Shown one piece after another: positions 2,061 through 46,004 of a stretch of DNA of 64,000 nt. This DNA comes from Cycas panzhihuaensis. Taxonomy: Eukaryota > Plantae > Cycadophyta. Within the stretch, counting starts at the first letter, position 1; every line of letters starts with the position of its first letter. A program made the translations under genes and the position numbers. The stretch is from contig CM041465.1 in assembly GCA_023213395.1 (NCBI GenBank), positions 121,651,741-121,715,740 on the forward strand, in the 5' to 3' direction. A model generated the notes under the pieces. That model was not told the origin of the DNA. It saw only the letters and a program-made list of their open reading frames with translations, and made no database searches.

Positions 2061-2077
2061 TAAACAATAAGGGAGGG

Positions 2078-2631: not shown

Positions 2632-2799
2632 GTTGAATAAAAGGAGATTCGAAAAGGGTGTTATTGGAGATGTGAATTCCAAGGAAAGCACGATACGACC
2701 ATGTAGATCAACTCTACCTTGCTTGTTCTAGATTTGGTTTGGCCAACTGTTGGATCTATTTGAAAGATTAGGGCTGGTCCAATTCATTGCCTAGTCCTC

Positions 2800-3878: not shown

Positions 3879-4499
3879 TGATAGGCTCATCTAATATCCT
3901 GGGCAGGTCCCTATTGGATGAGGAAGTAAAGAAAGGCAAAGATCTTAAATTGGTTAGCTAGCCAGTAGGTTTAATTACCAACCTTTGAGCCTCCAATGGG
4001 ATGGTTGAGGGTTGAATCCTTGACCCAAATAGAGTTTTTATCTCTTTGAAAGTAAAATATGAGACTTCATACACCTGAAAGTTCATAGAGCGAAAAGAAG
4101 ATATTTTGAGGTCCTCGCAATGGACTCATTATGCCTAGCATTAAATGTTCAGTTTTGTAATGTCATCCTAGCCCTCTCTATGTTTGTTTAAAGATTTTTT
4201 CATTTATTTGGTGTGCATTCATAATTTTTCTACTGCAATCCAAAATATTTTTATGTTTATATTTATCTTTCAAAGTTACTCGTTAAAGCTTTGTTCACTA
4301 CACGTTGGTATTTCCTTTCTTTATTTCCACTGATTTCTTCAACCTACAGGGCTTTATTCCTTTCTTGTATTCCACTGAAATATAGGTACTTATTCACTGC
4401 AAATGGTTTCATTTTAGCAATTGGTAGCTCTTGAATTGGATTTATAAATCTTCTTAAGTAAGGAAGTCAGTTCTTAGGAAGTCTTGTGGGTGAAGTAAG

Positions 4500-4830
4500 C
4501 AATAATAGAATAGCATTAGCCGTATATCTAAGGCTCTAAATCACAATAGGATATAGCTACTAATAGAATAACATCGGCCTTATATTTACCTATTAAAATA
4601 GTGCCATCTGATATATAATAGCCCTTGTCATTTGATAGATGAAAATTAAGATAGTGCCATCTCATAGATGATAGCCAATCCAAAAGCTTGATAGTGTATG
4701 ACTACTAATCAAATAGAAATAGCCTTGGATCTAAGGCTCTTAATAGGCATAGCGATAGCTACTAATAGAATAGAAATAGCCTTATATATACCTATTAAGA
4801 TAGTGTCATCTAATAGACAATAACTAATCT
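4500..4830. repeat. Degenerate modular repeats, with an inverted copy at ~5900-6090
   Basis: Recurrent AATAGAA(A)TAGCCTT..ATCTAAGGCTCT and CCTATTAAGATAGTGCCATCT modules; the reverse complement of 5900-6090 aligns to them. Confidence 0.6.
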
Positions 4831-5070
4831 GAAAGGGTGAGGGTAGTTCTGAAAGGAGGAGATAAACTCTAGTCGGGCCCTCACTTTATTGATTGATTTA
4901 AGGGGATAACGACCAACATTTTTATCCCCAAATCCTTCAATCTAATTGATAAGGGCACAATGATTTGTTGAAAAAGCCCCCAAGCCCTGGGCATTCAGGT
5001 CTCCCCTGGCCCTATTTCTTAGTTCTTCCTTCGATAAACCCTTTGTGTATGATCACAAACTTGGGACCAA

Positions 5071-5525
5071 CTCTGATACGAATTGTGGCAATACTTGTGC
5101 ATTTATGATAGAAAATAATAATAGTTATAGCATAAAACATTCATAACATAATCATCTGAGCATTCATAATAGTAGATTTCCATAGTGATCTAGAGATAAT
5201 AGCAAATCACAGAATAATAACGTATTTGCACAAGAAATAATGTAAAATATCAAATGAAATAACAACAAAATGGCCTCTTCTAGGGGGGAGCGTTTCCTCC
5301 CAAATAGCATAGCAGTTCTTTAATGGCTCTAGGCCATTAGTCTAACTCAAAGATGAAATTCTCCAAAGTTGTTTTGCAAATGAAAATGGTCTCTATTTAT
5401 AGCCCTATTTTTACTCTCTCTCTAAAACTCAATTTCTTTATTCTGTCTCCTAAAATATCAACTTCACATTAATAATTCCTCCTTTATTCTCCTAAAATTG
5501 ACTTCACATAATTAGGAATGCCATA
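5071..5525 (-). mobile_element. Truncated LTR element: 5' LTR (5084-5525) plus degenerate tRNA-iMet PBS
   Basis: Termini TGTGGCA...TGCCATA; CTCTGATACG at 5071-5080 is a PBS in reverse; reverse TATA (TATTTATAG) at ~5394. Confidence 0.7.
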
Positions 5526-6129
5526 AGGCTCCACTACCATCTATAGTGTAGGGCCCAATCTAATAGTGATCTATCTTATGGGATCTCATAAAGCCTCCTA
5601 TCTAGGCTTGGATACTATTATCTAGTTGTATGGTTCTTGATGTGCTTTTGAAGTCCAATCTTGCTCAAAAAAGTGGTTTGGAATTTGATGCATGTCATAT
5701 ACGATGCCATAAGTTGATGCATATCATATACGATGCCAGTCGAGTGGGTACTCACCTACTATTTCACATTCAATCTATTTCCTCTTGGCGAGCTATAGTA
5801 ATTGCTCCCATGAAGGCAACTAAAAATATTATAGAAATAAATTTGAATGGAAGGAAAAAATCAATTGATAAATGAGCTCCAATACATTGCATGTTGTTTG
5901 TTAAGAGTCTTAGATGTAAGGCCATTACTATATATTCCATAATCATATCCTATTGTTCTTTAAAGTCTTAGATCCAAGGATGTTGCTATATGATCAGTAG
6001 CCATATACTATCAAGCAGTATTCTTAACTATTGTCTATTAGACGGCATCATCTTAATAGGGAGATCTAAGGCTATTTCTAGCCTTTAACCGTCACTTTGC
6101 TTGTTAGAGCATCAGACAAGACCTTTTCA

Positions 6130-7614
6130 CAAGTCAAATTGATCATGTCATTCAAGTGTGCAATGTACATCAATGATGGTTCATTAATATCCATTGATTT
6201 AGAAGACTACTCCATTACCTTGTACAAAGAAGATTGATAGGGGTCAGGCAATCGCCTCTCTAGTAACCCCATGAAAGCCTTTTGACTTCACTTGTATGGC
6301 TTGCACCTAAGGATCTAGACCCTAGGCATTATGGTTGTTGTAGCTACCACTGACTGAGTCGAGAAACATGAAATAGGCAAGATCAATATGGACATGCCTT
6401 GTTTGGAGGATATCTACGATGATATCAATACAATGATCAAGCAGATCCATGATGTTAGTTGTTTTGTAAAGAGGCCTGATCATGAATACTTTTGGCAAGA
6501 AGTTCATGGTATAATGAATGCAAGGTGAGACAAATTCAACACCCACTTATACAACTTGGCTGATGCATTGAATCCAAGGTATTATGTAGTGGGCCCAACT
6601 CAAATGCAGCAAATAGAAACAGGATTTCTAGCAAATAAAGATAATCTTCACAGATATTCGCCACAAATTTTATGCAATTAACAATGGTAATTCTCCATAG
6701 AGATAACAATTTTAGCAGATAACATATATTTATAGCACATAAGTCTTCATAAAATATCACTCAGCAAACATAGTTCAACTATCCATGCAATACAACATCC
6801 ATACATTGATAAATAACGACAAAAGATGAAATGATAATAAATTAATAACAAAACTTGGTACATAATCCATTAGTTGCAACCCTCTTCGAGGTGGGAGTGA
6901 TCCTCCAATAGGCACAAGGCCTATATACAAAAGTGGTAATAAATTCTCCAAGATTGATTTACAAATGATCAAAGGATTTTCTATTTATAGCCTTTATTTT
7001 TTCTCTCACAACCAACTCCTAAATTCTCTCTCTACAAAAAACTAACTTCATAATAAAATATATTGAATGACTCTCTCTTTAATCCTCCTAATTTCATAAT
7101 AATAATTCCTTCTATAGAAAACCGACTACTTTATTTTGGGAATGCTACATATTATGACAGCTCTTGCATTATGTTTGAAATTAACAAAAAGCCCTCATGC
7201 AAGGACAAGGAGGTCTCCAATGGTTTCAAGGTAGCCCTTAAAACTTACTTTTGGATATGGATGATACCTTGGAAATCTTGACCCTATATTTGAATGTGTT
7301 CAAGTATTACTAGATAAAAGCAAGATGGATCTCGTCTCCTAGTGGATGAATAATGCTGTAGGGGTTGACTTCATGCAATCACGTAGCATTCACATTGTTT
7401 CACAAGCAATAAGCCCCTCTTTGACAAAGAGGAATTGGAGCACATATGGATTCACTCAGTCTATGGAGCGAAATGGGTTTGGGTCAAGTAAGACTGAAGT
7501 CTTGGCTTTTACACATTCTAACCTTCACATTCTTTCTCATGGTAAGGAGAATTACACAAAGGAGGGTCCTTTACAATTTTGGGATGTTAATCCCAAAAGC
7601 ACAAACTTAGAAGT
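6130..7614 (+). pseudogene. hAT transposase relic (catalytic region and C-terminal dimerisation domain), split by LTR insertions
   Basis: ..NAR*DKFNTHLYNLADALNPRYY resumes after the solo LTR as YDSS..KDKEVSNGFK, then SQAISPSLTKRNWSTYGFTQS..HSNLHILS, matching the hAT ERNWS motif. Confidence 0.85.
6585..7149 (-). mobile_element. Solo LTR inside the hAT transposase
   Basis: TGTAG...CTACA termini; TSD TATTA (6580-6584 and 7150-7154); the hAT frame rejoins on removal. Confidence 0.9.
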
Positions 7615-21300: not shown

Positions 21301-22439
21301 CCTTAAAAATTTCCTTGTAAAACTAAGGGGATTTCATCAAAAAATGACCCCAAATAGGAAATTGGAGAAGTAGCACAAGTGCACAGACAATATGAGGATG
21401 CAGGAGCTTAGGAGTAAGATAAGGAAGTCACAGTCAAAGAAGACATGGCAAAGCAAATTGCTTCAGATGATGAACAACTTATGTAGGAGCAACATGAACC
21501 CATTAACGAGTAATCAAAAGAGGATCCAATGGTGATAGAAGAATTTGAGGAGCGGTCTAAAGAAGAACATAAGCAATTCGAGAAAGAGTCCAAGCAATCA
21601 AGCAAATCCAACAAGGTATTCAACATAGTTCCTGATCCTATTTTGTACATGTCCATTTCCTTTGGTAATTTTATTGTTTTGCTTGAACTTCCCCATACCA
21701 TTACTTTAAAAGTTCCTCTACTCCATATCCAAAAATATTCCATAGTTGATTTAATACCTAAATCCAATGATTCCTAATTTTTCGTAGGAGAAACATTGGT
21801 CTCACTTTAGTCCCGTCATCTTGGTTCCAATTCTCACCTAGTTTTATCCATTAAGAAATCTTCTTCTGCACCTATCCTAGGACCCCTATCAAAACCCTTT
21901 TCCTATAAAGAATGTCTAGCACTAATCCCATATCCATCCATTATAGAATCTTTATCTCCTAAGATTGCTCATCTCTCCTATAGTATTCACTCTTCAATTC
22001 CCATCACATTTTCCTCCACAAACTATTCTTATTTATCTCTTATCCATTACCCTTCTAAGATCCTTAGTTGTCCAAACAATCCCTTGTTGGAATATAATGT
22101 TTAATGTGAGAGTCATTATGAATTGCAATTAAATGGTATTTAGTGGGTAGTTAGGTGGTTATATAACAACCATTAACAACCTTAAACCATGAGTTATATA
22201 TGTACACATTCGATTATTCAATAGATAAGTTAGTTTTTTTTTTTTTTTTGTAATGAGTGTGTGCATTTTTTCTGCATGGTATCAGAGCACGTTTGAGAGG
22301 TAGCCATGCTCATACTACTTGAGATGGTACTTCTCAAACTTGGGATGTGATGACATCAAGTAGCTCAGGGATGTAGTGTTAGGTAAGCAAAAGGGTTCCA
22401 GTGAAGCTTTTCTCTTGGTAAAGGTTTGGGGCAACAGCA

Positions 22440-23153
22440 ATGGCTATAGAGGTTACGAGGTCGATTCCACAAAAGCATAACAGGGAGGCTAAAATCAAAC
22501 GTGAAGGCATGAAGAAGACAATGATCATAGTAGATGCTAAAGATATTATAAATTGTAATTCCAATGCAGGCTCAGGCTCATCTGAAGAGGAAGATAAAGA
22601 AGCAGATGAACGTTTATTTGCAGAAGAAGAAGAAGCAACTTCTAGAAGTAGTGAAAAAGAATATGCAGAACCTTCTAAAAGGTTGAGCAAGGTGGAGAAG
22701 GAAAGTTCTAGAAGCATCGGCAAGGAAAACGAAGAGGAAGAAGGTTATGCTGACAGCAGTGAAGAAGAAGACAACAATGAAGAGGAAGGCATTGTCATTG
22801 ATAGTGAATGGTGAACAGGGGAAGAATCGATTTGTCGAGGGCTCCAATGCATTTTGTGTTGCATTTTCCAAAATTATGGAAAAGAAAGTTTTAGGCGATG
22901 CTTTGGGGCTTGTTTTGTCTACACACAAGAAACTTATTGCAAAGAAGCTAGCGAGCTCAAGGTTAAGAGTGAGGCTAAGAAAGAGAAGTGCTTGCTTAGA
23001 GAAAAGGATCATGTGAAGCCAAAAAGCTTCTTGGATGCAAAGGAAAAATCTCTTATTAGGTTGGCAACCAAAGGAGTTGTGAAATTATTTAATGCGATTA
23101 GCAAGGCACAAAGTGTTTAGGCTGGTTATGACATTTCAAAGTCACAGGATGCT
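22440..23153 (+). pseudogene. RRP15: Captured RRP15-like ribosome biogenesis gene fragment
   Basis: Acidic N-terminus, AFCVAFSKIM..VLSTHKKL and EKSLIRLATKGVVKLFNAISKAQ (Rrp15p signature); frameshifted. Confidence 0.88.
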
Positions 23154-23327
23154 TGTTAGGAGTTTGAAGGATTTTTATTGCAGTATCTCAACAAAGTCTA
23201 GGGGACTCAAATAATTGACGGTGGGTAAAAATTGAAACCATAATGCAATGAAAGATTTAGACCCCCTGCCTCCATAACTGTGCAGAGAAACGAACAAGGA
23301 ACACTGCCTTAAGAGAAAGCAAAGACT

Positions 23328-23649
23328 AGGAAGGAAGCAATTGATGAGATATTCTTCAAGAAGAAGAAGAAAAGGGAGGAGATTACACCTCACGAGGCAC
23401 TAAGATGTCCTTTAGGGGATACAAAAAATAGTAATGTAGTCGGTGAGAAGGACACCAGGGGTTCAACTAATCCAAAACAAAAGAAAAAGAAGAAAAAGAA
23501 AGGAAACGAACGGCCTGATCCTCCACCATGCCCTACAAGGGAAAACCCATGATGCCTTTACAATTTACTCAACAGAGGAGATCGGATATAACAAGAAGGA
23601 TGTAGATGCCACCCCTCTCTGCCCCTTCGACTGTGATTGTTGTTTTTAA
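23328..23649 (+). pseudogene. Captured DUF1764-family gene fragment, including the stop codon
   Basis: AIDEIFFKKKK followed, after one frameshift, by KTHDAFTIYSTEEIG...TPLCPFDCDCCF*. Confidence 0.85.
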
Positions 23650-23815
23650 TGGGATTTTAGACAACCAGTTTTGCGCACAACATATGATCTATCCATTTTT
23701 GTCGCTTCAATGTTGATGGACACACAAGGAACACCGTCTTTGTGATCAAATTTCATTTTTGGCTATTGTGGAATTTAAATATATATTTGTGATTGAATAG
23801 TAAGGAGCAGGGGGG

Positions 23816-24400
23816 ATGGCTACCAAGGTCAACCTTCCCAATGGGGTTGTTGTAGAAGGGAAGCATTGTTATTCAATTTGGCACAGTACGTTCAAGATAG
23901 ACACCAAATACATGTCCATCAAGCCAATTGGGAAGGGTGCATATGAAATTGTGTGTTTGGATAAGAACATAGAGACCAACGAGAAGGTTGCAATTAAGAA
24001 GATTCCCAATGTCTTCGAGAATTAGACAGATGCCAGAAGAACCCTTTGCGAAATAAAGCTTCTTCGTCAATTGATGCACGACAATATTATTGCCATGAAA
24101 GACATCATGATACCTATTGGTCGGTCCACCTTCGACAATACTTATCTTGTCTATGATCTGATGGATACTAACTTGCACCAGATTATTAGGTCTTCTCAAG
24201 ACTTGACGAATGATCATTGCCAGTATTTTCTTTATCCGTTGCTTCAAGGCCTGAAGTATTTGCATTCTACCAATGTTTTGCGTAGAAACTTGAAGGCCAA
24301 TAATTTATTGTTGAATGCCAATTGTGATCTCAAGATATGTGATTTTGGCCTGGCTTGAACAAGTTGTGAGAAAGGATAGTTCATGATTGAGTAGTGGGTT
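23816..24400 (+). pseudogene. Captured group-C MAP kinase (MPK1/2/7/14-like), N-terminal ~195 codons
   Basis: MAT.V..PNG...GKH.Y..W...[21 protein letters not shown] and LKICDFGLA; ends at the activation loop; internal stops; no intron. Confidence 0.95.
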
Positions 24401-24591
24401 CACTTTTTCTATAAATTGTTTTTAATGCAAAATCTATTTTTATTGAATGGAAGGTTTTTGGTTCACTGATTTTTATGTTGATAGCAAAGGTATGTGTGCT
24501 TTGTGCCTCCATTGCTGCATTTAACAGTGGCCCTCAACTAAATATCTCCATTTTCGTTATCTTTAACGGAAAATAGTGTTGCATTTTATAG

Positions 24592-24853
24592 ATATCGAAG
24601 AATTCATGGGATCAAATGCCAAGCTTAGTGGCTTGGAAAAGCATAGCGTGGAGGTTGTGAGTAAGCATAACATGTCAGATGATTGTTGGCTTGTGATATC
24701 GAAAAAGTTTATGATGTTACTAAATGAATTCCTCATCATCCAGGAGGTAGCCTTATCTATGTGAGAGCTGGGAAAGATTGTACTCAACTTTTTGAATCAT
24801 ATCATCCACTTTATGTAAGGAAGATGTTGGGGTGCTACTGCATTGGAGAGGTC
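24592..24853 (+). pseudogene. Captured cytochrome-b5 domain of a front-end (delta-5-type) fatty acid desaturase
   Basis: SKHN..DDCWLVI / YDVTK*IPHHPGGSLIYVRAGKDCTQLFESYHPLYVRKML..YCIGE closely matches the moss/liverwort delta-5 desaturase N-terminus as I recall it. Confidence 0.85.
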
Positions 24854-24859
24854 AAATGG

Positions 24860-25228
24860 GTTGTAGATGAAGCAATGGCTATGATATTATGTCTTAAAAA
24901 TGAGAAGGCATCTATTGAGATTGAAACACAACAATACAAAAGAATGGTGGAAGAGAAAACAACTTATGATGAAGAAGCAATTAACATACTCAAGGAGATC
25001 ATGGTGAAGAGAGAAAGAGAGAAGGTTGCTCTAGAGAATGAAGTGAAAGGTTACTTATTGATAGAATTAACAAGTGGGAGAAAGGGCCACATACTAAGGC
25101 AAAGTATCACATGGATGAAAGCAACTCATTTTCACATGGAAGGGGGCAAAAGCTTGTGCTTCTCCTTGAAAAGAAAAATGAATGCCATGAAAACCAAGAA
25201 ACTGTTCCAGAGGGAAAGAATTTGTTGA
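24860..25228 (+). pseudogene. Captured GTD-binding/zein-binding domain (MyoB/FLOURY1-like) fragment
   Basis: DEAMAMILCLKNEKASIEIETQQYKRMVEEKTTYDEEAINILKEIMVKREREK. Confidence 0.9.
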
Positions 25229-25639
25229 GTATGCATACCGGGACTCACACTAGTAGATGAAAGTTCAAGTCAGTTACCACCCTACTTCCAATCTTTAGTA
25301 GGAACGATTGGGTTTTTCAATAGTTGCAAATAAAAGGATTTGAAGAATGCAAAATGCTGAGGTTTCATGGCAATGGAGAACGTACGCATTAGGCAGTAGG
25401 TCTTATTGAAACGCTTGCAACCAACATCTTTCCCCAAGGCTTCAATTGACATTCAAGCCTTTGTATGTACAGTTGGAGACACTACAAGGTGAATTTTAGC
25501 TTGAATTCAACTTTCAGGTAAATCTTGGTCCAAGGAAGGGGTAGCGGTGTAAGTTCATCTGTTAGTTGAGGTTCATGTCAGAACTAGACATTCAAGTTTT
25601 TGAAGCCTATGATTCATTTGTCAATGTAAATGTTGTTGA

Positions 25640-26400
25640 TTCATGAAAATATGACCCTATTTATTGAAGAAAAAAATTATTGGCACTAGATAAGATTGAT
25701 ATATGAGTTCAAGCATATATCGTAAAGACTAAAGACAAGCAGGTGAAGATAGTCTATGAAATTTGAAAATTGAAATCATCATAGTAAAGTAGGTGATGGT
25801 GAAGCTTTAGTCTCCCATGTTTTATAAGAGTTTTGTATTTGATCATGGCAGTTGTATTACTGCTTGAATGTATACCTTTGTAGTAAACACATGAAAAAGG
25901 CAGTTATTGATTGTTGTAATATGCGTGCTTTGTAAGAACCAATAATGATAGTTGTTTTGACCAAAGAGCCAATGATGATGATGATAATGATATTTGTGAC
26001 CAAAATTTGGTCAATGTTGGTGTTGAGAATCTCGTATGACAAAAGGCAAGATTAGCACAGGTTGGTAGACATTGCTTGCCAAGTAGTACAACTTGTTCTT
26101 GAATGTCTAGTTTTACGATATCTTTGTGGTCAAGTAGTTTGGATTGCTCTCGAGATACATCTCAATGAATTGAATTGTTGAAGGGGTTGAAATGTAACCC
26201 AGACGAAGATTTATTCAGTGTTGATGAATCATGTATCCAAAGATATTATTTAGATAATCGGTAGACACATAGGTTGGTTACCGATGTGATCTGGTGGATG
26301 GTGATATCTTTATATGGATGTCAACAACATTTTTTTAAATGAAGCATGTGTATAAGCACACTAAGTGATGTAGATTGATGGTGAAGCATCAGGAGAACAG
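25640..26400 (+). pseudogene. Collapsed copia gag-pol relic in cargo element 1
   Basis: Only traces remain: KARLA (~26043) and GW*YLYMDVNNIFLNE (~26296-26343), compare QMDVKxAFLNG. Confidence 0.55.
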
Positions 26401-28920
26401 AGGTTGTGTTTGGTATAGTTCTTTTATTGTAAGAAATTAAACATTATGGGGGGGGGATGTTGGAATATAATGTTTAATGTAAGGGTCATATGTTTAATGT
26501 GAGAGTCATTATGAATTGTAATTAAAGAGTATTTAGTGGGTAGTTAGGTGGTTATATAACAACCATTAACAACCTTAAACCATGAATTATATATGTACAC
26601 ATTTGACTATTCAATAGACAAGTTGATTATTTGTTTTTTATTGAGTGTGTGCATTTTTCTTACATCCCTTACTCATTATAACGCCTAGTCTTCTGTGTGC
26701 TCTATATCGAATCAATTTCCAAATCTTGCATACATCTCCACTCTTTGGATGCTTGTAGGCCATCCAACTACTGGCCTATTTCGAAAGATTCATCTGTCTC
26801 GATGGTGATCAGTAATGGTAGCCATAGTGTTGCTTTTTTCTTGGCCATATCCTAACTTCATTTCACTCTTCCACTGTACGGTCTTCAAGCCTGATCAACT
26901 TGATAGTTTTTCTTGCCCCCGTCAATGGCCCCTCACTTTGATTCGTTCTTCCTCTGTACTATCATCATGCCCGATTGACCTAACTTTCCCAAATGCCCAC
27001 CACTGATCCTTTTTAGGTAGAATCAAGAGTACACCTATGAGGCTGCAAACCCACTTGGCTCTATGAGGGCGAGACACAGAAAAGGCCTTCAACAGAGAAA
27101 GTAAAGAGGCCTTGCCCCACCTTCCTGTGTTCCCCCCGTGAACCGGTGTAATCTACACAAGTGCTCTCCAAATCATGCTGGATAGTAACCCATCACACAA
27201 CTCTCTAACTTCACTTTCTTTGTGTTCTGTCCAAACCCAAAGGCGTGTCAATTCGATGGTTTTATAGCATTCTTGAATTCCAAAGTAGAAATCCAATCAG
27301 AGTGCCCTCTTAATAGTGACCCTTTTTAATCAGGATTTCATGTTGTAGTGTTCTCTTCCTTTGTTTAGCTCGATTTTGTTATATCATTCTTGAATTCCAA
27401 AGTAGAGATCCAATTAGAGTGCCCTTAGCCTTGGTAATCAAGATTTCACACTGATCACTTCATCAAAGCCCAGTTTTTCCTCATTACTCAATCTTTCTTA
27501 CAATATGCTCAGTACTTTTAAACAATACCTATTAGGTAACCATCATGACTATTCTTACCACCTTATCACCTATTCCCCAAACATAACCTATTCCTTTTTC
27601 ACAAAATATTCTTTATATTTTCAATTCCCCACCTTTGCCCTTCATCTATTCGAGAAAAATCCTTTTTTCAAAGTGAAAAATCCATGGACAAATTGTGCAA
27701 CTAGAAAAATAGGTTTTTAGCCACGTGCCATTAGCATTACACAAGTCTTAGGATTGTTTTTATATAGGAAGGGATATGAAGCTCATCCAATTCCAGACAT
27801 AATCAACTGCATGCACAGGTCATGTATTGATTATTTCCAAAAGATTTCATACGGGTGGACCAAATTATTATGACATATAAGCCTTAGAAGATGGTAGATT
27901 GAAGACTAAGTGGAATGCAGCTTCAATTGATTCCTTGCATTGTGTTTATACTTTGAGGGCAAGGCATTTTAAGGAGGGGCTGGAGCAGAGCGGGGGGTAG
28001 GGGGTAGGGGAGTTGTTACAAGCATAATGTGAAGTCAACTCCAAATAGATTATTACATGCCTAATTATGTTAATATGAAGTCAGGTTCAAATACGCATGT
28101 GAAGTCAACTCCAAATAGGCCCATGTTATGGCTATAAATGAGGGATCCCTAGTCAATTATTATCATCTTTTGGAATTATTATTCTGTCATATTTGGATAA
28201 TGGATTAAAGCCATTGTGGCGGTTAGGGGCCTTAGAGTGTTAGATTGTATAATATAAACTTATGTAATTTTATGTGTCACATGTCTAAATTAAAAATTAA
28301 GTTATTATAATGTTTTTATCTTAGGTGTATTTAATTAAACTTGTGGAAGGTCGTTGAATATGCGAAACTGCATTTCAACGAACCTCCTTGGTACTTAACC
28401 TCCTAAATTCACAGCAATTCACCAGGAATCTAGGAGGGCTGTCCTAATGATGCCTGAAGGCTGGTCTATTTCTTAGAGGTATTTTCTATGCATGTTTTAA
28501 ATTCTATATTTTAATTAATAAAATTATATAGCTTAGGAGGTGGTTTTTTATTCCCCAGAAGGGGTTTTCCACTGTCAACTTTGTGTGTATGCAAGGTCGC
28601 TTTATATCGTTTATATCTGTAATTTCTTAACTGTGTTCTTGTTATTGTTTTATTGTGATCCTGTTAATGACACTGTCATATGCATATTCTCCTACATGGT
28701 ATCAGAGCACGTTATGCCCTTTTTTTTCTGTCTGTTATTTGATTTTTTGCTTTTCTTCCTTTTTTAAATTATTTTGGTCATCTGAACTATGTATTCAAAA
28801 TCAAAAGAAACCAAGTTTTTTTTGAATACGCCATTAAAGCCAAAAACTTTCACTAAACAATAAATTTTCTTAGAGACAAAACTGCCATTTATACAAACGG
28901 CCTTTTATTTAAACTGTCAT

Positions 28921-36126: not shown

Positions 36127-39100
36127 TGTTAAACCTTGTGTTTTACCTTATGTTTACATGTTAAGCTTATGTACTTTATGTTTATGTATTATGTGTGCAC
36201 TTTAATGTTTTATGTGCACTTTTGTACTTTAGGGGTGACTTTATCACTTAAGTGATAAAGTACACACCCACTTTATGTCTAGTGACATAACGTTGTCACT
36301 TATGTCACTTGAGGGTCAAATGACCCCCTTGCACTTTTGCTCACACAAGAGCTGCCAACGGACACCTGTCCTACCTGCGAGCAGGCCTAGCATGATTGAC
36401 ACTTGTCAATCATGTAATAGCCCTTGGCCTCTCATTTCCCTCTATTTAATGAGGCCTTTCTTCATTGTTGTTCATTCAAGAGTTGGAGCTCATTGTTACT
36501 CTGTCAGTTTGCTAATCAAGCTAAAGCATTCTTTGGTGGTTGGACTAATTCCGATACCCCATTCATGGTATCTTGATCTTGCTCCTCTTTCTCTTTGTGT
36601 TCTTTGTGTTTATGCTTAATGCATTTAATGATATTGTGCTTTGTTAATGATCTTGGACCTATGTGGCCATTAGGCCCATTCTAACAATTGGTATCAGAGC
36701 TGAATGGTTTACTAGAGCTGAAAGGTTTGGTCACTAAGTTTGATTGAGTTTTGGCTTAGTATCCTTTGCAAATACTTTGCATATTAGCTTGTTGTCCCCA
36801 TACTTGTCTGCTATCCTTGGAATCTGCACATCACTGTCCTCAAATCCTCTTGCTAAACTCGCCTGCATCAAGCCTCAAAAGGTCAGGTATATTTGGAACC
36901 TGCATAAATATCAGGGTCTGTCCCTGTACCTGGAGGTCTGTCCCTGCACAAAACTGCACACAGGATTCAGCACTTGAGTCTGCCCACTAAAGGGGCCGCA
37001 GCAAAAGCTTCTGGTACTTTGTCCTCTCACGGACCTGCACGAACTGTCAATGAGGAGTTACGGGAGCCAGCCCTGTTCTATCTGGTAGTCGTCCCTGCAC
37101 GGAGCTTGCATGGGAGGTACTGTGCACAGAAGCTCCGTCAACAAGAGCCGCACGAAGGGGAGTCCGTCCATGGGAGGTCACACGAACCTGCACCCGTATC
37201 TGCCCACACGGGCGCCTGTCCACGGGGGACGCAACTCTGCGCACGGAGCGCACGTCAAGACCTGCACACGGGGGCTGAACAGAAGAAGCTTCTGGAAGCT
37301 TCCGGAAGACTGCACGCTCACGGACTGCGTACAGAGGAAGTCCACGTCTCACAAGGGACGAAAGGGCCTGCACGCGATTCGATCCAGTGCACGGAACATT
37401 CCACGGAATATTCACAGAAGGTTCCATTGTCACGGGAGCCGCAAAATCAAAACACGGACAGCGAAATTCGACTTTGGCATATGTTGCATATTCACTTTAC
37501 TATATTCTAAAGTATATGCCTAATTTGATAAAGTCTTTTATAAAGTCTCTTTTATTAAGAGAAATTTTTTATTATTAATCGAGGTTAAGAGGCTTTTATT
37601 ACTTTAAGAGGAATTTTTAATCAAGGGGGGGTTTAATGCTCTAAGAGGCTTTAAGCCATTCAGCTATTTGAAGACTGTTTTAAGCAAACATTCGCAGCAT
37701 AAGTGCTTTAAGAGATTTTTTTTTTGAGATTTAATCTCTTTTTTTAAAGCATTTTTTGTGGCTCACAAAAGTACTTTTTTGGTACTTAAGAGGATTAAAT
37801 TTTCTTTGATGGAAAGAGGACTCATCAAATGACTCATGCTAAGTCATTCTCCTCTCATTAAGGATTGAAGTTGCATGATTTAAATGCTTGAAAAGACTCC
37901 CTGCGTGGTGTTCTAGTGAGGCAAAGTTACAAGAAAGGTTGATTTCAGCCTTCATTTTATGCTTTTTTAAGCTCTTTTAGCATTTTGTTTAATGCTATTA
38001 AAGTAGTTAGAGCTTAATTGAAGTGGTCAATAAGCATCTTCGTATTGTAAAGGTGATAAACATCACCATTTGAGTTGATTTTTTGGCACCTTGTATGGTG
38101 ACCCATAGCCTTCAAAATCTCAAAAAGGAGGCTGAATTTTGTACTTAATAAAAATCACACTTTCTGTTGGATTGTTGAGACTATTTTAAAGTCTCAACAA
38201 CTTGCTGCTTGGAGTTCGTTTGGTGTTTGGAGTACATTGAGTACACTTTGGCAAGTGGTTCTTTCTCTACATCGGTTTTGGAGCGTTAAAAAGAACCCAC
38301 TTCTGCAATCATCATCAAGGTTTTGCATCAATTTTTTCACTAAGTACTAAAATCTCAAAAGTACTTACATTATTGTACTCAAGCATTTTACTTGGACTTT
38401 CAAAAGCACTTAAAACTCAATCAAAGTGCTCATTATTGGCATGTACTTGCTTCTTAAGAAGCCTATCATTGTAAGCTAAATCATAGCATCTACATTAAGT
38501 ACATAATCCAAGTAAAAGTACCTTAAAATTCACTTTAAAATTTTCTAAAAAGTGAATTTTAAAATCTGGCTGGAGAGGCTCGAAAAAGGTTTAAACCTTG
38601 CCTCTGCTACACTTAACTTTGGATCAACTCAATAGCCGAAGTCCTCCACCCCTCATCACTCCACCCAGTTGTTGGATCTTCTTGTAAAATCAGAATTGGT
38701 GGTGTTGTCAGAAGGTGGAACTTAAGCGACAAAGCTTTGAAGTTACCAAGTTATTTGTTAGCTTTTATACAAGTGAAAGATGACTGCAATTAACATGCTC
38801 AATGCATGCACAATAAGGTTAACATGACAAGCAAATTATCAAGAATGGAAAAGAATCACACAAAATCTCTTGATAATGAATGAATTTTGGGGATATGTTT
38901 CTGGGAGAATCCCCAATCCTGCACTTGTTGATGATGATGAAGTTGATATTGATTATGAGCGTGTTGCTACTTGGGAAGCCAAAGACGAGATTGCTTTGGC
39001 ATTTCTTCATATGATTGTGGATGTGCATGTAGATCAAAACATCTCTTCTGCTAAATCTTCTAAAGAAGCTTGGGACACTTTGTCCTCACTGTATGAAAGG

Positions 39101-42100
39101 CGAGATGAAGCTCGCATTTTGATGGTGAAAGCCAAACTGTATTCTATCAAATTTGTCAAGCCTATGTCGGTTTTTCTGTCCTCTATGAAGGAGGTTTGTA
39201 ATGAATTGAATACTTTAGGTAGTCCTGCTACAAGGGATGAACTCATCACATCCATCACCAAAGCATTGCCAAAGGACTACAACGGCTTCATATCATCTAC
39301 CACACGAGATGGTTCACTTAAGAAGATGACATTTAATGAACTTGAAAGCTTATTGCTTCAAGAAGAACAGATTTATGCTAAAAACAATGAAGAACCATCT
39401 ACACCAGGTGCCTTCACGGCCAAGTCAAAGGCCAATCAGATCTCCAAACCTACATTCACAAAGTAGTTTGGAAACATGAACATTGGATCTTCTAAGTCCA
39501 ATGTTGTATGTCATTATTGTGACAAATCTAGCCACATTGCACCTGATTACAGAAAGAAGCAGGCAGATCTACGACGACAACAGTAACAGCAACAACAGCC
39601 ATAAGGACAAAGACAACAGTAGCCAAAGCAACAATATCAACAAAGATTTCAGAAATGACGAGCAGTTAGAATCCCCTCGACCAAATCGAGGTGCCTATCG
39701 AGGAGGTCCAAGAGGAAGGGGGGGTCAAAGAGGTGGCTACCAACGCCACTTTAATCAGTTTGCCGATGAAGACAAATTGTTTTGTGCATATCAGTCATCC
39801 AAGGTTGATCACACTTGGATAGTTGATTCAGGAGCTTCTCAGCATATGACAGGGAGTGAAGAACTCCTATGCAATATTAAGGAAGGTAAAGGTCACTCAG
39901 TGACCTTTGGAAATAATGAATCTGTTGACATTTCAGGCATAGGCACAATAGCTCCTTTCCATTCTACAGAAAATCCTTTCTCAACATTTCCCAATAGTGA
40001 TGCATACTTCATTCCTTCCATGGAGAAGAGTTTGCTATCTGTTAGCCAGTTGGACAAGCAACAGATGAGCGTGTTATTCAAGAATGGGAAATGTATCATT
40101 AGTGACAGATCGTAGCTATTGCCTATGAGGATCAAGGTCTTTACAAGTTGGATGCCAATAACATTACACTTGATTCTGCTTATTCTGGTTCCATGGTCAT
40201 TATATTTTTGTCAAAAATGCAATTATGGCATCAACGTCTAGGTCACTTAAGCCTAGATAATTTGAAGTAGATGATGAACAAAAACATGGTATATGGACTT
40301 CCAAAGATATATGGTTCAAAATGTCTTTGCGAAGCTTGCATAATGGGGACTCAGCATCGTTTGCCATTTCCTAAAGGCAAAGCATGGCGTGCATCTTATC
40401 CATTGCAGTTGATTCACTCAGACTTATGTGGACCCATGTCCACTCAATCATTTGGAGGAGCATTGTACTACATATCCTTCATTGATGACTTTTCTCATAA
40501 AGTCTGGGTCTACTTTATAAAGCAAAAATCAGAAGCTTTCTCTAAGTTCAAAGAGTTCAAAGCTGAAGTAGAAAATGAATCTGGCTACTCAATTGAAACA
40601 TTAAGGACAGATAATGGAGATGAATTCACTTCAAATGAATTCAAACAATACTGCAAGGACAATGGGATTCGAAGACAACTTACACTTCCTCATACTCCTC
40701 AACAAAACGGAGTCTCTGAAAGGATGAATAGAACTTTGGCTAACAAAGCCAAAACTATGATGCATGCGAAAGGACTTCCTCGAGCTTACTGGGTCGAAGC
40801 ATTTCACACAGCAACCTATGTGGCCAATCGGAGTCCTACTACAACAGTCGCCAACATTACACCTGAGGAGGCATGGACTGGTAAGAAACCGACTATTAGC
40901 CATTTGAGGACATTTGGGTGCACTGCATATATGCACATACCTGATTAGCAAAGAACAAAGTTGGATAAACATAGTCTCAAATGCATCTTTGTAGGATATG
41001 CCATTCATAGCAAGGCCTACAAGTTGTATGATCCAGTTGGGAGAAAAATGCATCTCTCAAGAGATGTAATCTTTGTTGAAGATGATCAGAAAGAGTTGGA
41101 TGTGGCATCAATCCAACCCCCCATTGATAAAGACAAAAAGATTGTTGAGGACTTCCTCCCTCTCAATCTTCAACACCATGCACTTCATTTGCACCTCTTG
41201 TACTGTCCACTTCATCATCGTCTGCTCCACTTGAACCTTCCACATCATCTTCTGTTGATCAATCACTTAGACCAGAAGACATTGAGGTTCATGCTACATC
41301 ATTTCAAAAGTTACCTAAATGGTATACTCAAACAGTGCAGGACAGTCATATTATTTAAGGGAAACGTCCATCTAAATATAGGCAACAAACAAATTTTGCA
41401 CTTATGGCTAAAGTGCTTTCTATTGATGAGCCTTCTACTTTTGAAGAGGCTTCAAAAAATGTCAATTGGAAAGCTACCATGGATGAGGAGATCCATTCTA
41501 TTCACAAGAATGGCACATGGGATTTGGTCGAATTGCCTCCACATAAACAGGCAATCAGTTGTAAATGGGTCTATAAGACCAAATTTCATTCTGATGGTAC
41601 ACTTAAGCGTCAGAAGGCACGCCTTGTGGCGAAGGGATTCAAACAAAAGGAAGGCATTGATTATGAGGAAACCTTTGCACCAGTGGCAAACATGAACACC
41701 ATCAGACTCCTTATGGCCTTAGCTGCACAATGCAAATGGGCAGTTTATCAGATGGATGTGAAGAGCACCTTTCTTAATGGCGATCTTCAAGAGGAGGTAT
41801 ACTTGGAGCAACCTCCTAGTTACAAAGAACAAAGCAAGGAGCATCTTGTGTGTCGCCTCAAAAAGGCTTTGTATGGCTTGAAACAAGCTCCTAGGGCATG
41901 GTATGCAAAAGTTGATGAATACTTCTTGAGACATGGGTTTCATCGATCTACATCAGATCCTAATCTGTACATCAAACATGAACAAAACCATGTCATTTAT
42001 ATTGCCTTGTATGTAGATGACTTAGTGATCACTAGTGATGACACTAAGCTCATCAAGATTCTCCAAGATGATTTGAAGAGAAGTTTCGAGATGACTGATC

Positions 42101-43522
42101 TTGGACTTCTCCATTATTTTTTAGGCTTTGAGGTATCGCAGCAGCTAGGCTATATCTTCATCTCCCAAGCAAAATATTCTTGGGACATCTTGCAGAGATT
42201 CAGGATGCATGACTGCAAGACAGTGCCTACACCTATGGAGAACGGAACCAAGCTTACTCTTAATGAGGAAGCTGAACTCGCAGATACCACTCTCTTCTGA
42301 CAGTTGATTAGTAGTCTGATATATCTCACCAACACTTGTCCATACATTTCATTTGCAGTTGGGATTTGCTCTCGATTCATGTCTCAACCCAATCAGAAGC
42401 ATTGGAAAGCAGCAAAACGCATACTCGAGTACATCAAAGGTACATTACAGCTTGGTCTTGAGTATGCACATAATGAGAACTTCACTTTGGAAGGGTTCTC
42501 TGATTCTAATTGGGAAGGATGCCAGGATAGCAGGAAATCAACCTCGGGTTACTGTTTTACCCTTGGTTCAGCAGCTGTTTCATGGAGTTGCAAGAAGCAA
42601 CCAAATGTTACCTTGTCCTCCAGGCAGTACAAAGTTGCGATCGGTAGCGCAGCTTGCGAGGCTATCTGGCTACGACGGATTCTTGGGGAGCTTGGACTTG
42701 AGCAGGAGCAGCCTACCAGTATTCATTGCGACAATCAGAGTGTGCTCAAGCTAACTAAGAATCCAGTCTTTCATGCACGGACCAAGCATATTGAAGTTCA
42801 CCACCATTTCATCAGAGAGCATGTACACAGTGGTGAGATCAATCTTCAATATCGACCAACGAGCAAAGCAGACAAACATCTTTACCAAGCCACTTGGTAG
42901 AGAGAAATTTGTAAAATTTAGAGATGGTCTAGGGGTCCGACTTAACATAGTAAGCGAAGGGGTTATTAAACTTTATGTTTTACCTTATGTTTACATGTTA
43001 AGCTTATGTACTTTATGTTTATGTATTATGTGTGCACTTTAATGTTTTATGTGCACTTTTGTACTTTAGGGATGACTTTATCACTTAAGTGATAAAGTAC
43101 ACACCCACTTTATGTCTAGTGACATAACGTTGTCACTTATGTCACTTGAGGGTCAAATGACCCCCTTGCACTTTTGTTCACACAAGAGCTTCCAATGGAC
43201 ACTTGTCCTACATGCAGCGAGCATTGCATGATTGACACTTGTCAATCATGCAATAGCCCTTGGCCTCTCATTTCCCTCTATTTAATGAGGCCTTTCTTCA
43301 TTGTTGTTCATTCAAGAGTTGGAGCTCATTGTTACTTTATCAGTTTGCTAATCAAGCTGAAGCATTCTTTGGTGGTTGGACTAATTCCAACACCCCATTC
43401 ATGGTATCTTGATCTTGCTCCTCTTTCTCTTTGTGTTCTTTGTGTTTATGCTTAATGCATTTAATGGTATTGTGCTTTGTTAATGATCTTGGACCTATGC
43501 GGCCATTAGGCCCATTCTAACA
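36127..43522 (+). mobile_element. Full-length Ty1/copia LTR retrotransposon
   Basis: LTRs 36127-36686 and 42964-43522; TSD GTCTA; PBS 36689-36700; PPT ~42953-42963. Confidence 0.97.
38780..42948 (+). pseudogene. Copia gag-PR-INT-RT-RNase H polyprotein, several stops and frameshifts
   Basis: WIVDSGASQHM, HSDLCGP, LRTDNG, PQQNGVSER, KARLVAKG, LYVDDL and CDNQS in copia order. Confidence 0.96.
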
Positions 43523-44135
43523 GTCTAATGGTGTACTTGTGTTAGAATATAATATTTAATGTTGTGTGAGTCTTAGGGTCAATAGTCTCAAGTATTAGAG
43601 GGTAAGAGTCATTTGTCATCATAACATTATTAGTTAAGTTAGTAGTGTAATGTCATTAGTTAGAGTAAAGGTAATAGTCTCGCATGCATTAGATCTATAG
43701 TGTGATCTCCCACCTACTTAGTATATAAAAGTGGTTGAGGTGGTATATGAAATACAAGTTATCATGGAGACTCATATAGAGTCCCTAGTATAGTTGGTGT
43801 TCTGATGTAATCTGTTGATGTTAAGTTAATTCATTGTGGTCCTTGTCCATTGATATTGCTGGGTGTTTGTTAATGAATGCTTTCCATATTATTCTTAACA
43901 TGGTATCAGAGCAGGTCGATTGTTAAGGCTTTTGGTATGCAGATAAGGGAGGAAGGTGACTCCATTAGGGCGGCTGATAGATTAAAGATTTAAATTGAAG
44001 AGGTGAAGTTCCAGGTCATCATTAATACAAGGCATGCCAAAGTATCAGGACGACAGAAATCTGAACCGGGTAATACTGTTCCCTAGTGTACTCTCTACCA
44101 CCTCGTATACCTTTGGTTTATCTACTTCATATAGC

Positions 44136-44450
44136 CTAAGTCTTGGTGATGGTCGCAAACTTGTAGCCATTGCATTCATCAATGCTTTCTGAAGTTTGTC
44201 TCTCTCTAAGATCCTTAAAATAAGTATGTCGAAGAGTTTGCCTAGCTGATAGCCTGTCATCAGAGTTGAAGGCAAGCAACTTATTAAGAAGCTCTATATA
44301 TCCTGAAGATACATGTGGAATTAAATTGAAATCTGCCTGTTGTGACCTCCTTTTTATTTTATCCAAAACCTGTTGTGGGGGAATTCCCAAAATCTTGTGG
44401 ATTTTTTGCATCTGATCTAGCTCATTATTACCTGGAAATAATGGGAACAA
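44136..44450 (-). pseudogene. MOK: Captured MOK/LF4-like kinase C-lobe fragment
   Basis: FPLFPGNNELDQMQKIHKILGIPP..KIKRRSQQADFN/LIPHV..LLNKLLAFNSDDRLSARQTLRHTYFKDLRE; appears to have an in-frame deletion of about 11 aa. Confidence 0.78.
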
Positions 44451-44728
44451 GGTGAGGAGTCAGAGAGAGAGAGCTAGAGCCTAAGAAAAAGGAAGTCTGC
44501 TGAGTTGATGCCCTCTCGAAGCTTCATCTACCTTCTATTCTTTTGCACTTTATCAATAATTTCTCGAGGCAGGAGACTCAACAGGTGCAAGTCTATTGAC
44601 GGGAGCAGTGACAGTACACAGCCAGGTGACAAAATACCCGAAAGTCCACTAGAAGGTTGTCCAACGACTCGAAAATAGTTACAAGCAAGGAGATTGGATC
44701 TGGTGCATATGATGGGCCTGTTTCATTT

Positions 44729-44788
44729 GCAATTGACATAAGCATAGTGTCTGTTCTCTATCACATATTCCACCGTGGCAGTGTTAAT
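44729..44788 (-). pseudogene. tufA: Captured 60-bp fragment of plastid-type EF-Tu
   Basis: Hand translation [20 protein letters not shown] versus the EF-Tu consensus [20 protein letters not shown]; not in the ORF track. Confidence 0.85.
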
Positions 44789-46004
44789 GTACTGGACGTA
44801 TTACCATTGATATACTGTAAACGATCTCTGCAATGTTTGCATAACCAAAACCACTTAGTAGTTTTGAACTATCACAGGCTTCGCTGGAATTATCATCTAA
44901 CCTCCTCTCCACGGTAAGATTCTCAATACTCCTCACCTATAGACCAGTAATAGATTGTGTCTATTCAGCCTGTCCATTTCATTTTATTATTGCTGGAAAC
45001 AATTTTAAGCAATCTTAACTGAGATACCTTTGAAGTGAGCTTGAAATTTTCCAAATGCACTTCGCTGGATTCAACAACTGGGGAGACTGATTTAAACAAA
45101 GCATGTACTGCTCCTAAGATGATTCAATTCCCATATCATTGGTAGAATGTAATCCAGTAGATAGAATCAGAGATGACCCAGCTGTAGCCATGAAATAGTG
45201 GTGATAGCAGATGACCTTGTCAGACACAACTGCTTAGAATACATAAAGTGAAGAGTCTTTCTACATGAAGATCGTGCATGAGACAACGTGAGAGGCGTGC
45301 GAGCCAAAAAATTTCTTGAGGAGATCCGAGTTGTATGTACATAATTGATGTTGAAAATCTGTGCATGACCATGGACAAACTCTACAGCTAAGTACAAATC
45401 ATGGTAAAACAGGGTTAACTTGAAGAAGACCTTCAAGTTATTCAAGGATAACCCAAGCTTGAAACTTTTCTATGAACTGACCTTGTGGATGCACATTCTG
45501 AACGTGAGTAGAAGAATGTGAGTTCTGAGCTAAGATGACGATAGTCCAGAACAGTTGGTAACATCGTAGCAGCTGACATTGTTTGAAACTGGGTCATAGT
45601 CCGTGCTCAAACCAGGGATCATTAACACAATCAGAAAGGACTGAACTTGTTACGTAGATTGTTATGACAGATGATCTTTGTGGAGTTGTGAAGAAAGCTG
45701 TTGAATAGAAAGCTATTTGAGGGATGGCTGATGGATCCACAAACAGTGGTAGAGAACCAATAAATGAGCAGGCTGTTGTTAACTGAGTTGTATAGCTACT
45801 GGACAACATCAACTCACTTATTTGGTAAAGTCTTTTGAGAGTTCTAAAAGTCAAGTTTGAGATAGTACCTAGCTAATTTAGATACTTTAGAATTGACACA
45901 GTTGTAGACGTCTATTTTGCTGCTAGACATCTTCCAGTTGAAGGTTATCTTGACAAGTTTTTTTAAGTATATGAATCTAGCCTAATACATTTTTTTCATA
46001 CATC

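Follow-up and report, generated by a model that had tools for sequence, protein, structure and literature searches.

The window analyzed here, a 64-kb stretch of the Cycas panzhihuaensis genome, contains an LTR retrotransposon of 4,580 bp that lies as one unit at positions 22085-26664. Repeat comparison delimited a 5' LTR of 192 nt (22085-22276, plus strand, TGTTGG...CTGCA) and a 3' LTR of 207 nt (26458-26664, plus strand, TGTTGG...TTACA), which are direct repeats with TG...CA ends and are 92% identical (K2P distance, 0.086); the 3' LTR carries a 20-nt tandem duplication at 26470-26509. As read directly from the sequence, the PBS TGGTATCAGAGC (22277-22288, plus strand) adjoins the 5' LTR, the polypurine tract (PPT) GGGGGGGGGA (G9A; 26448-26457, plus strand) adjoins the 3' LTR, and a 5-bp TSD, TCCCT, flanks the element at 22080-22084 and 26665-26669. 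The PBS is of the type that we take to be complementary to the 3' end of initiator tRNA-Met in plant LTR elements; no tRNA gene was found within the 64-kb window. Short-read contigs from one run contained an empty site in which 22085 is joined to 26702, with a single copy of TCCCT and with the 31 letters between matching 26670-26701. This site is paralogous, lying inside a copy of the flanking repeat; no orthologous empty site was seen. Its presence in independent contigs confirmed the boundaries of the element and, together with the TSD, indicates that the whole chimera integrated as a single LTR unit. The complete LTR/PBS/PPT/TSD unit at 22085-26664 that an earlier sequence-only reading had described was thus upheld by direct reading, by LTR comparison, and by the empty site.

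A leader hairpin was located next to the PBS, at 22290-22341 (plus strand), on the basis of contig depth and of folding compared with shuffled sequences. It folds with a predicted energy of -27.5 kcal/mol (z score, -3.5), and none of 200 shuffles folded equally well. Summed contig depth was 590-2135 over the 5' LTR compared with 2-8 for unique DNA, stood at approximately 128 at 22317, and dropped to single copy inside the 22316-22487 bin. The hairpin appears to be common to the element family, with the cargo starting directly after it. On the 3' side, a repeated internal region at 25176-26447 (plus strand) was defined by contig depth, which is 17-61 at first and climbs to 700-4650 on approaching the PPT.

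The element is old, dead, and nonautonomous, and its LTRs are short and TRIM-like. When TRIMs are defined by LTRs of ~100-250 bp, no coding capacity, and a total length below ~1.5 kb, the LTR length and the lack of coding capacity fit, but the element is too long at 4.58 kb (~1.75 kb minus the cargo). The carrier probably belongs to the Copia lineage, to which only the PBS type and the LTR start, TGTTGGAAT, point. Pfam analysis of 20 stop-free pieces, in which a pol remnant was sought, gave no match. Motifs suggestive of Copia pol occur within 25176-26447 (QKARLAQVG at 26040 and YMDVNNIFLN at 26308) but are not above chance, and tblastn queries consisting of the Copia RT open reading frames of the window itself returned four weak colinear motifs. 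Since the reverse-complement control and shuffles reached the same score as this motif chain, and Pfam was blank, the "ruined gag-pol" of the sequence-only reading was dropped. No inverted repeat with arms at both cargo borders was detected, so no TIRs bracket the cargo; neither this search nor a nonexhaustive look for Helitron ends identified a Pack-MULE, Pack-CACTA, or Helitron carrier. What the LTR pair does enclose, at 22343-25175, is the content expected of a Bs1-type element, namely, host-gene fragments, five of them supported by Pfam.

The cargo measures ~2.83 kb and lies between the leader hairpin and the 3' internal region. It is made up of pieces of five unrelated genes, all on the plus strand, which is the sense of the element, and all pseudogenized. 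Pfam identified them in order as Rrp15p (E value, 8.8e-14), DUF1764 (3.1e-14), Pkinase (1.3e-23), Cyt-b5 (1.1e-6), and Zein-binding (2.9e-21), and the spacing between the recognizable coding parts ranges from <15 to ~205 nt. These results bear out the RRP15, DUF1764, mitogen-activated protein (MAP) kinase, and MyoB/GTD-type fragments recognized previously, together with their shared sense orientation and close spacing. For the piece that had been called a delta-5 desaturase cytochrome b5, the Cyt-b5 domain was substantiated by Pfam, by a protein-cluster atlas, and by PDB; the desaturase origin was not, the domain being generic only.

The RRP15 fragment (22343-23225, plus strand), detected by Pfam Rrp15p and tblastn, has a start that was estimated from depth to within 10 nt on either side. 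It comprises ~97 nt of presumed 5' untranslated region (UTR), Met1 at 22440, and codons 1 to ~262 of ~340, and it has decayed through two frameshifts and several stops. Full-length, mRNA-derived RRP15 proteins aligned colinearly with it in tblastn from residues 1-5 over ~240-260 codons, and its closest named protein is Ginkgo Gb_04480. The DUF1764 fragment (23313-23649, plus strand) retains almost the full coding sequence (CDS) through the natural stop, with one frameshift (A-rich run near 23480). It matches positions 43-100 of the 100-position Pfam profile, with an additional weak match to positions 3-50, and its presumed 5' UTR lies inside 23226-23312. A homologous-protein search with this piece gave no candidate, a blank that length and word limits make weakly informative.

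The MAP kinase fragment (23743-24400, plus strand) was identified by Pfam Pkinase, by tblastn with MAP kinase fragments, and by parent-like contigs. At least 73 nt of presumed 5' UTR precedes Met1 at 23816, and the coding part runs through ..DFGLA..FMxE(Y), with stops at 24023, 24356, 24377, and 24392. The homologous-protein search returned only short fragments of at most 68% identity and no parent. Because tblastn with MAP kinase fragments found no kinase homology 3' of this piece, the 91-nt stretch at 24394-24484 (GT...AG, T-rich) was rejected as a retained MAP kinase intron and was assigned, as an unproven reading, to the putative 5' UTR of the next piece. That piece, the cytochrome b5 fragment (24401-24846, plus strand), would begin with ~205 nt of presumed 5' UTR (24401-24605), followed by an ATG at 24606 and the domain up to ..CYCIGEV, and contains one frameshift and one stop. 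Pfam gave a second, weaker Cyt-b5 match (0.056), the nearest atlas clusters were all Cyt-b5, and the PDB matches were to cytochrome b5. The Zein-binding (GTD-binding, MyoB-type) fragment (24855-25175, plus strand), supported by Pfam and by parent-like contigs, is internal to its gene (profile positions 32-92 of 92) and is joined in frame to the cytochrome b5 piece, from which <15 nt separates it.

Four of the five pieces (RRP15, DUF1764, MAP kinase, and cytochrome b5) are anchored at Met1 behind a presumed 5' UTR, the UTRs having been assigned by position alone. The MAP kinase, cytochrome b5, and DUF1764 pieces open at or beside their N termini, and ~70-205 nt of noncoding sequence precedes each. 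At their other ends, the RRP15, MAP kinase, and cytochrome b5 pieces stop within the CDS, and the DUF1764 piece ends within ~90 nt past its stop codon. None of the inner joints inspected at base level showed a poly(A) tract or a TSD. Genomic gene models that are truncated (Gossypium, Papaver, Protea, and three JGI contigs) begin or end at two columns through which the RRP15 piece continues unbroken, and this continuity over two predicted exon boundaries indirectly suggests a spliced mRNA source. Such intron loss, bracketed from other plants, is inferred for RRP15 only; the MAP kinase piece may be a single large first exon and hence silent on splicing.

Contig depth over the cargo was approximately single copy, equal to that of the unique flank and flat across all five pieces, indicating that sibling copies are absent, and the depth of the LTR contigs was hundreds of times higher. 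The TSD and empty site support the earlier proposal of a "Pack-LTR" that transposed as a unit as far as one-unit integration goes; later amplification is not supported, and the label "gene-collecting" overstates the case. Short-read contigs from independent runs of three organisms covered five of the six inner joints; one of these organisms, for example, yielded a 1,038-nt contig across 23064-24105. The joint between the Zein-binding piece and the internal region was spanned by none of the contigs listed. Parent-like contigs were seen for the MAP kinase piece (90-93% identity, one diverging from the cargo at 24393) and for the Zein-binding piece (92% identity, reaching 25171), and none were seen for the RRP15, DUF1764, and cytochrome b5 pieces. 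The difference of 7-10% between parent-like contigs and cargo, alike for the two pieces (7.1% and 7.7-8.1%), is close to the LTR-LTR distance of 8.6%, consistent with capture and insertion having occurred at about the same time. No RNA run was found to contain the stretch, from which silence does not follow. The element decayed without further copying and shows no sign of function.

The all-sense orientation of the pieces, the position of four of the five at an mRNA 5' end, and the continuity of RRP15, together with the absence of TIRs, poly(A) tails, and internal TSDs, favor an RNA-level origin of the cargo. We consider it probable that reverse transcriptase switched onto copackaged host mRNAs and that the resulting chimera integrated once. 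As we infer the RNA source, its packaging in the particle, and how many jumps took place and in what order, reverse transcriptase would have left the element RNA during minus-strand DNA synthesis in the virus-like particle and copied copackaged host mRNAs in succession. Because the enzyme moves 3' to 5' on RNA, the order of copying would have been the zein-binding gene, the cytochrome b5 gene, the MAP kinase, DUF1764, and RRP15. In four cases it would have run off the mRNA at its capped 5' terminus, forcing a jump to a new template. It would finally have returned to the element RNA immediately downstream of the hairpin beside the PBS, a landing that would preserve what second-strand transfer and integration need. 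The chimera would then have integrated one time, creating the TCCCT duplication, and decayed afterwards. That the entire chain belongs to one replication cycle, with capped mRNAs copied to their extreme 5' ends and a jump forced each time, is a reading that we hold tentatively and with some doubt. Other elements of the same genome, including that at 43539-47786, bear antisense cargo, and one simple minus-strand model cannot cover those elements.

Stepwise transduction as in the retroviral-oncogene or classical Bs1 models, in which read-through or fusion transcripts add one fragment per cycle, is the mechanism classically proposed for the three Bs1 fragments (PMC13317346), and the very high summed depth of the LTRs suggests a high copy number and hence numerous earlier rounds of replication. 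We nevertheless consider it unlikely here. Intermediates with partial cargo are absent, depth being flat and approximately single copy over the five pieces, and the divergence from parent-like contigs is similar for two of them (7.1% versus 7.7-8.1%). Read-through should also bring along promoter or intergenic sequence as well as exons farther downstream, whereas the pieces start in presumed 5' UTRs and are truncated 3'.

A patchwork assembled at the DNA level after insertion, either as break repair filler (SDSA/MMBIR type) or through a nested Helitron or Pack-type transposon, would draw on processes known in plants, where both multitemplate filler and multigene capture by Helitron/Pack-type elements have been described (PMC13317346, PMC13477047), and the intron test that bears on it is only indirect. 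Yet TIRs and a second TSD are absent around the cargo, all five pieces lie on the strand of the element (a chance of 1 in 32 under random orientation), and RRP15 is contiguous over two predicted exon boundaries. Copying of genomic DNA would not leave four of five pieces anchored at Met1 behind a short upstream stretch, and we regard this explanation, too, as improbable. Five separate LINE-mediated processed pseudogenes, or an assembly artifact, are very improbable indeed: processed pseudogenes abound in large plant genomes, but the fragments lack poly(A) tails and TSDs of their own and have lost their 3' ends, not their 5' ends, and the contigs from three organisms that cover five of six inner joints speak against misassembly.

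Retrotransposon gene capture contributes to exon shuffling and can link donor genes to transposable element (TE) silencing. Template switching onto host mRNAs, as we propose it, would make the five ordered, same-sense pieces, most of them anchored at an mRNA 5' end, an unusually readable record of capture. It predicts that the upstream border of each sense piece is the transcription start site of the donor gene, which bears on the first- and second-exon bias seen in genome-wide surveys and so far unexplained. If run-off and jump were general, it would supply a mechanistic reason for the preference of TE-captured pieces for first and second exons in vascular plants (PMC13477047).

Compared with known systems, the capture is of the Bs1/TRIM kind and represents no new class. 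Bs1 of maize (Jin and Bennetzen 1994; Elrouby and Bureau 2001, 2010) is an exon-only multigene capture and, like the present element, has a low copy number, lacks a pol of its own, and holds several unrelated host-gene pieces between its LTRs. Bs1 has three exon-only pieces and an expressed chimeric open reading frame (PMC13317346), whereas the five pieces here are pseudogenized and absent from RNA runs and, unlike those of Bs1, sit in four of five cases at an mRNA 5' end. Soybean GmaRetroS15 and other gene-carrying TRIMs contain exon pieces that lack introns and derive from as many as three host genes (Gao et al. 2016, PMC4717578), and they share with our element short LTRs, a 5-bp TSD, and no coding capacity; they are 1.2-1.4 kb long and mostly multicopy after capture, in contrast to the 4.58 kb (~1.75 kb minus the cargo) and single-copy cargo observed here. 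A 2026 survey of 23 vascular plants reported large-scale capture of gene fragments by TEs, including gymnosperms and LTR retrotransposon examples, with ~13.7% of capturing TEs carrying at least two pieces and with first and second exons favored for reasons that it called poorly understood (PMC13477047). The present element comes from the same lineage, its RRP15 piece being closest to that of Ginkgo; while the survey treats the 5' bias statistically and does not settle its cause, this element displays the bias piece by piece, and the orientation and order of its pieces match the prediction of the run-off-and-jump model. In maize, a survey of LTR elements (Baucom et al. 2009) recorded 425 elements and at least 189 captures of gene fragments, with no element carrying pieces of multiple nuclear genes (PMC2774510). 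Against that survey, five pieces in one element are extreme within the range known so far, and the element is a long example of retrotransposon gene capture.

Each stop-free piece of the cargo, the host-derived part of the element, was compared with Pfam separately. The sequence-only reading had described five host-gene fragments on one strand, and all five pieces gave matches on the + strand, which is the element's own: RRP15 (Rrp15p, 8.8e-14), DUF1764 (DUF1764, 3.1e-14), a MAP kinase (MAPK; Pkinase, 1.3e-23, its N-terminal piece matching too), cytochrome b5 (cyt-b5; Cyt-b5, 1.1e-6, first half 0.056), and a zein-binding piece (Zein-binding, 2.9e-21, profile positions 32-92 of 92), whose profile is the myosin GTD-binding domain of MyoB-type proteins. 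The gaps between recognizable coding parts were about 88, 166, 205, and <15 nt, in agreement with the proposed spacing of within ~200 bp. The outer cargo borders, ~22343 and ~25175, were set by steps in contig depth and by a contig resembling a parent (the host gene from which a piece presumably came) that ends at 25171.

Searching a library of 1.84 billion proteins with the RRP15 piece retrieved full-length RRP15 proteins; the closest named protein was that of Ginkgo. In tblastn, RRP15 proteins were colinear with the cargo: the alignments open at residue 1-5 (22440-22449) and close at residue ~243-275 (23153-23225). Because the alignments begin there, ATG 22440 is, on homology, the genuine RRP15 start codon; the piece retains ~260 of ~340 codons, with two frameshifts and several stops. 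The DUF1764 piece reaches the last profile position and a natural stop at 23647. The MAPK piece runs from Met1 at 23816 through DFGLA to FMxE(Y) near 24400 and contains four stops, and tblastn found no kinase homology 3' of it; the proposed group C membership is a candidate assignment that would fit the N-terminal sequence, by comparison with Arabidopsis MPK1/2. The cyt-b5 piece extends from ATG 24606 to CYCIGEV near 24846, with an F..YHP motif that we take to resemble the fused-desaturase type. It had been read as the cyt-b5 of a delta-5 desaturase; the generic cytochrome b5 domain stands, but the match is to the domain only and does not carry the delta-5 desaturase origin. The zein-binding piece follows in the same frame, and together these two pieces form the window's 166-codon open stretch, 24728-25225.

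A repeat search of the window found a direct repeat flanking the element interval, and a complete LTR/PBS/PPT/TSD unit, as first proposed, was read base by base: TSD TCCCT (22080-22084), 5' LTR (22085-22276; 192 nt, TGTTGG...CTGCA), PBS TGGTATCAGAGC (22277-22288), PPT G9A (26448-26457), 3' LTR (26458-26664; 207 nt, including a 20-nt internal tandem duplication), and TSD TCCCT (26665-26669). The interior (22289-26447) comprises a leader, the cargo, and a repeated internal region. The PBS is presumably the type that pairs with the initiator tRNA-Met 3' end in plant LTR elements; a tRNA search of the 64-kb window found no tRNA gene. Folding gave a leader hairpin at 22290-22341 (-27.5 kcal/mol, z -3.5), and contig depth suggests that it is common to the LTR family. 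Of 187 aligned LTR sites, 15 differ (K2P 0.086), equivalent to roughly 3 My if the rice rate of 1.3e-8 is applied and to ~20 My under the slow 2.2e-9 that is often assumed in gymnosperms.

Short-read Logan contigs from four low-coverage runs, representing three labelled sources (organisms A, B, and C), were aligned to 21800-26950. In organism B, one contig derives from a paralogue of the flanking repeat; in it, position 22085 abuts sequence that matches 26670-26701. This element-free site has a single TCCCT, and the element borders and TSD are therefore real. Near-identical contigs span the leader/RRP15 joint in organism C (22320-22565), the RRP15/DUF1764/MAPK joints in organism A (23023-23804), and the MAPK/cyt-b5 and cyt-b5/zein-binding joints in organism A; in organism B, a 1,038-nt contig covers the RRP15/DUF1764/MAPK joints over 23064-24105 at 98% identity. 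An assembly artefact is thereby ruled out, and the chimera is older than the split of the three organisms. A run search found no RNA run on record that contains the element stretch.

Summed contig depth, which in all figures given here is not copy number, was 2-17 across 22316-25067 versus 3-8 in the unique flank (26788-26950); it climbed from 17-61 to 700-4650 across 25068-26443 and was 590-7500 over the LTRs. The cargo is therefore about single-copy, and the LTRs and 3' internal region are those of an abundant family. The element sits within another repeat (21800-22084 and 26670-26787; summed depth ~180-560) that ends near 26788, where depth falls to single-copy, and the ORFs of this repeat gave no Pfam domain.

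The sequence-only reading had also placed a ruined gag-pol beyond the cargo, and this claim was not borne out. No Pfam family matched any of 20 stop-free pieces of 25040-26460 and of the gaps between cargo pieces. Comparison with the window's own Copia RT ORFs gave four weak colinear motifs (EPSTFEEAS, IEKNGTW, QKARLVAKG, and YQMDVK..FLN); the score of this chain was equalled by a reverse-complement control and reached by shuffles, and a gag-pol remnant was dropped. The 3' internal region is sequence common to the LTR family, and only the PBS type and the LTR's opening TGTTGGAAT suggest Copia membership. In contigs from other members of the family, 25669 is joined to 25962, 25666 to 25770, 26098 to 26222, and 26164 to 26285; the element thus has ~100-290-nt stretches (25666-25962 and 26098-26285) that are absent or replaced in relatives and could be further small insertions.

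A near full-length Copia element lies at 36129-43515 (LTRs of ~550 bp, 36129-36679 and 42966-43515, 96-97% alike), with ORFs matching Retrotran_gag_2, Pol_BBD, rve, and RVT_2 (3.8e-80). It has no nucleotide match to the cargo-bearing element and, by this comparison, is a different family. A second cargo-bearing LTR element (43539-47786; LTRs 99% alike) begins 24 bp after it, with an identical PBS, TGGTATCAGAGC, and an LTR start, TGTTAGAATATAAT, resembling that of 22085-26664. Its cargo is the C-terminal half of a MAK/LF4-like kinase in antisense (44139-44459) and is therefore not 5'-anchored. Elsewhere in the window are a truncated Copia RT (56-934; RVT_2, 5.5e-35), a minus-strand Gypsy-type integrase (56111-56869; Integrase_H2C2 and rve), and, just 3' of the element, a 56-nt direct repeat (27253-27308 and 27370-27425; 89% alike, 117 nt apart).

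How the five pieces came together can be judged from their ends. A Pack-type DNA transposon nested in the element would bracket its cargo with inverted repeats, and a repeat search found none around this cargo. Separate LINE-made pseudogenes would be expected to carry poly(A) tracts and duplications, and neither was present at the inner joints inspected at single-base resolution; moreover, the pieces are cut at the 3' end, not the 5' end. Together, these observations argue against both explanations. Four of the five pieces open with a short non-coding stretch and a true or near-true N-terminus, the stretch upstream of the start being ~97 nt before Met1 in RRP15, at most 87 nt in DUF1764, at least 73 nt in MAPK, and ~205 nt in cyt-b5. 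Combined with the shared strand, this is a pattern that random genomic breakpoints would seldom yield.

For RRP15, introns were assessed from truncated models that had been predicted from the genomic DNA of other plants. In five such models (Gossypium, Papaver, and three JGI contigs), homology sets in at a single alignment column that immediately precedes (L)xEKGHV; in three of them this column directly follows LQ, which a ...CAG splice acceptor would be expected to give. Immediately after KDAK(G), homology is lost in the models from Papaver and Protea. Both columns look like conserved exon borders, and the cargo is uninterrupted at the corresponding positions, 22991/22992 and ~23156. This continuity, bracketed by other plants' models, moderately supports a spliced-mRNA source for the RRP15 piece. 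The MAPK piece is uninformative on splicing; over 23743-24115 it is colinear with a genomic contig that resembles a parent.

In the same runs, the MAPK and zein-binding pieces have contig counterparts at 90-93% identity; length-limited protein searches with the MAPK and DUF1764 pieces found no parent protein. One MAPK-like contig diverges from the cargo for 106 nt from 24393, exactly where kinase homology ends, and so appears to behave as a parent gene should. In all four runs, one contig at depth ~5 passes from 25042 straight to 25171, leaving out 128 nt (GT..AA), and another parent-like contig is unbroken across this interval; the shorter form may come from a second zein-binding paralogue. 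Divergence of the cargo from parent-like contigs (7-10%) is similar to the LTR-LTR distance (8.6%), and contig depth in the four runs gave no sibling copies with part of the cargo. These data are weak evidence for capture in or near the cycle that made the insertion, rather than slow accumulation.

Minus-strand synthesis travels 3' to 5' on RNA, and successive template switches would produce a sense-oriented chain. In the path that we infer, reverse transcriptase would have quit the element RNA near 25175, copied part of the zein-binding mRNA, and switched into the cyt-b5 mRNA. Having copied this to its 5' end, it would have jumped into the MAPK mRNA, again copied to the 5' end, then into the DUF1764 3' UTR, continuing to that mRNA's 5' end, and then into RRP15. 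From the RRP15 5' end, it would have rejoined the element RNA immediately 3' of the stable leader hairpin. Four of the six jumps would have been forced by template end. The integrated product is non-autonomous, without later copying.

The element is a long, clean case of an already known kind of gene capture. Hundreds to thousands of LTR-captured genes have been catalogued in rice, sorghum, and maize (PMC3726574), and a 2026 study covering 23 vascular plants put captured fragments in the hundreds of thousands for each gymnosperm genome, with ~13.7% of capturing TEs holding at least two pieces and single TEs able to contain pieces of unlinked genes (PMC13477047). In maize, by contrast, none of the LTR elements surveyed contained pieces from more than one gene (PMC2774510). 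Captured fragments uniformly favor first and second exons, a bias whose cause "remains poorly understood" (PMC13477047); this element is of value as a readable example and points to a cause of this 5' bias that can be tested. Maize Bs1 likewise holds host-gene pieces in an LTR element, but three rather than the five seen here (PMC13317346), and in soybean the TRIM GmaRetroS15 contains intron-free fragments from three genes (PMC4717578), compared with five pieces in the cycad element.
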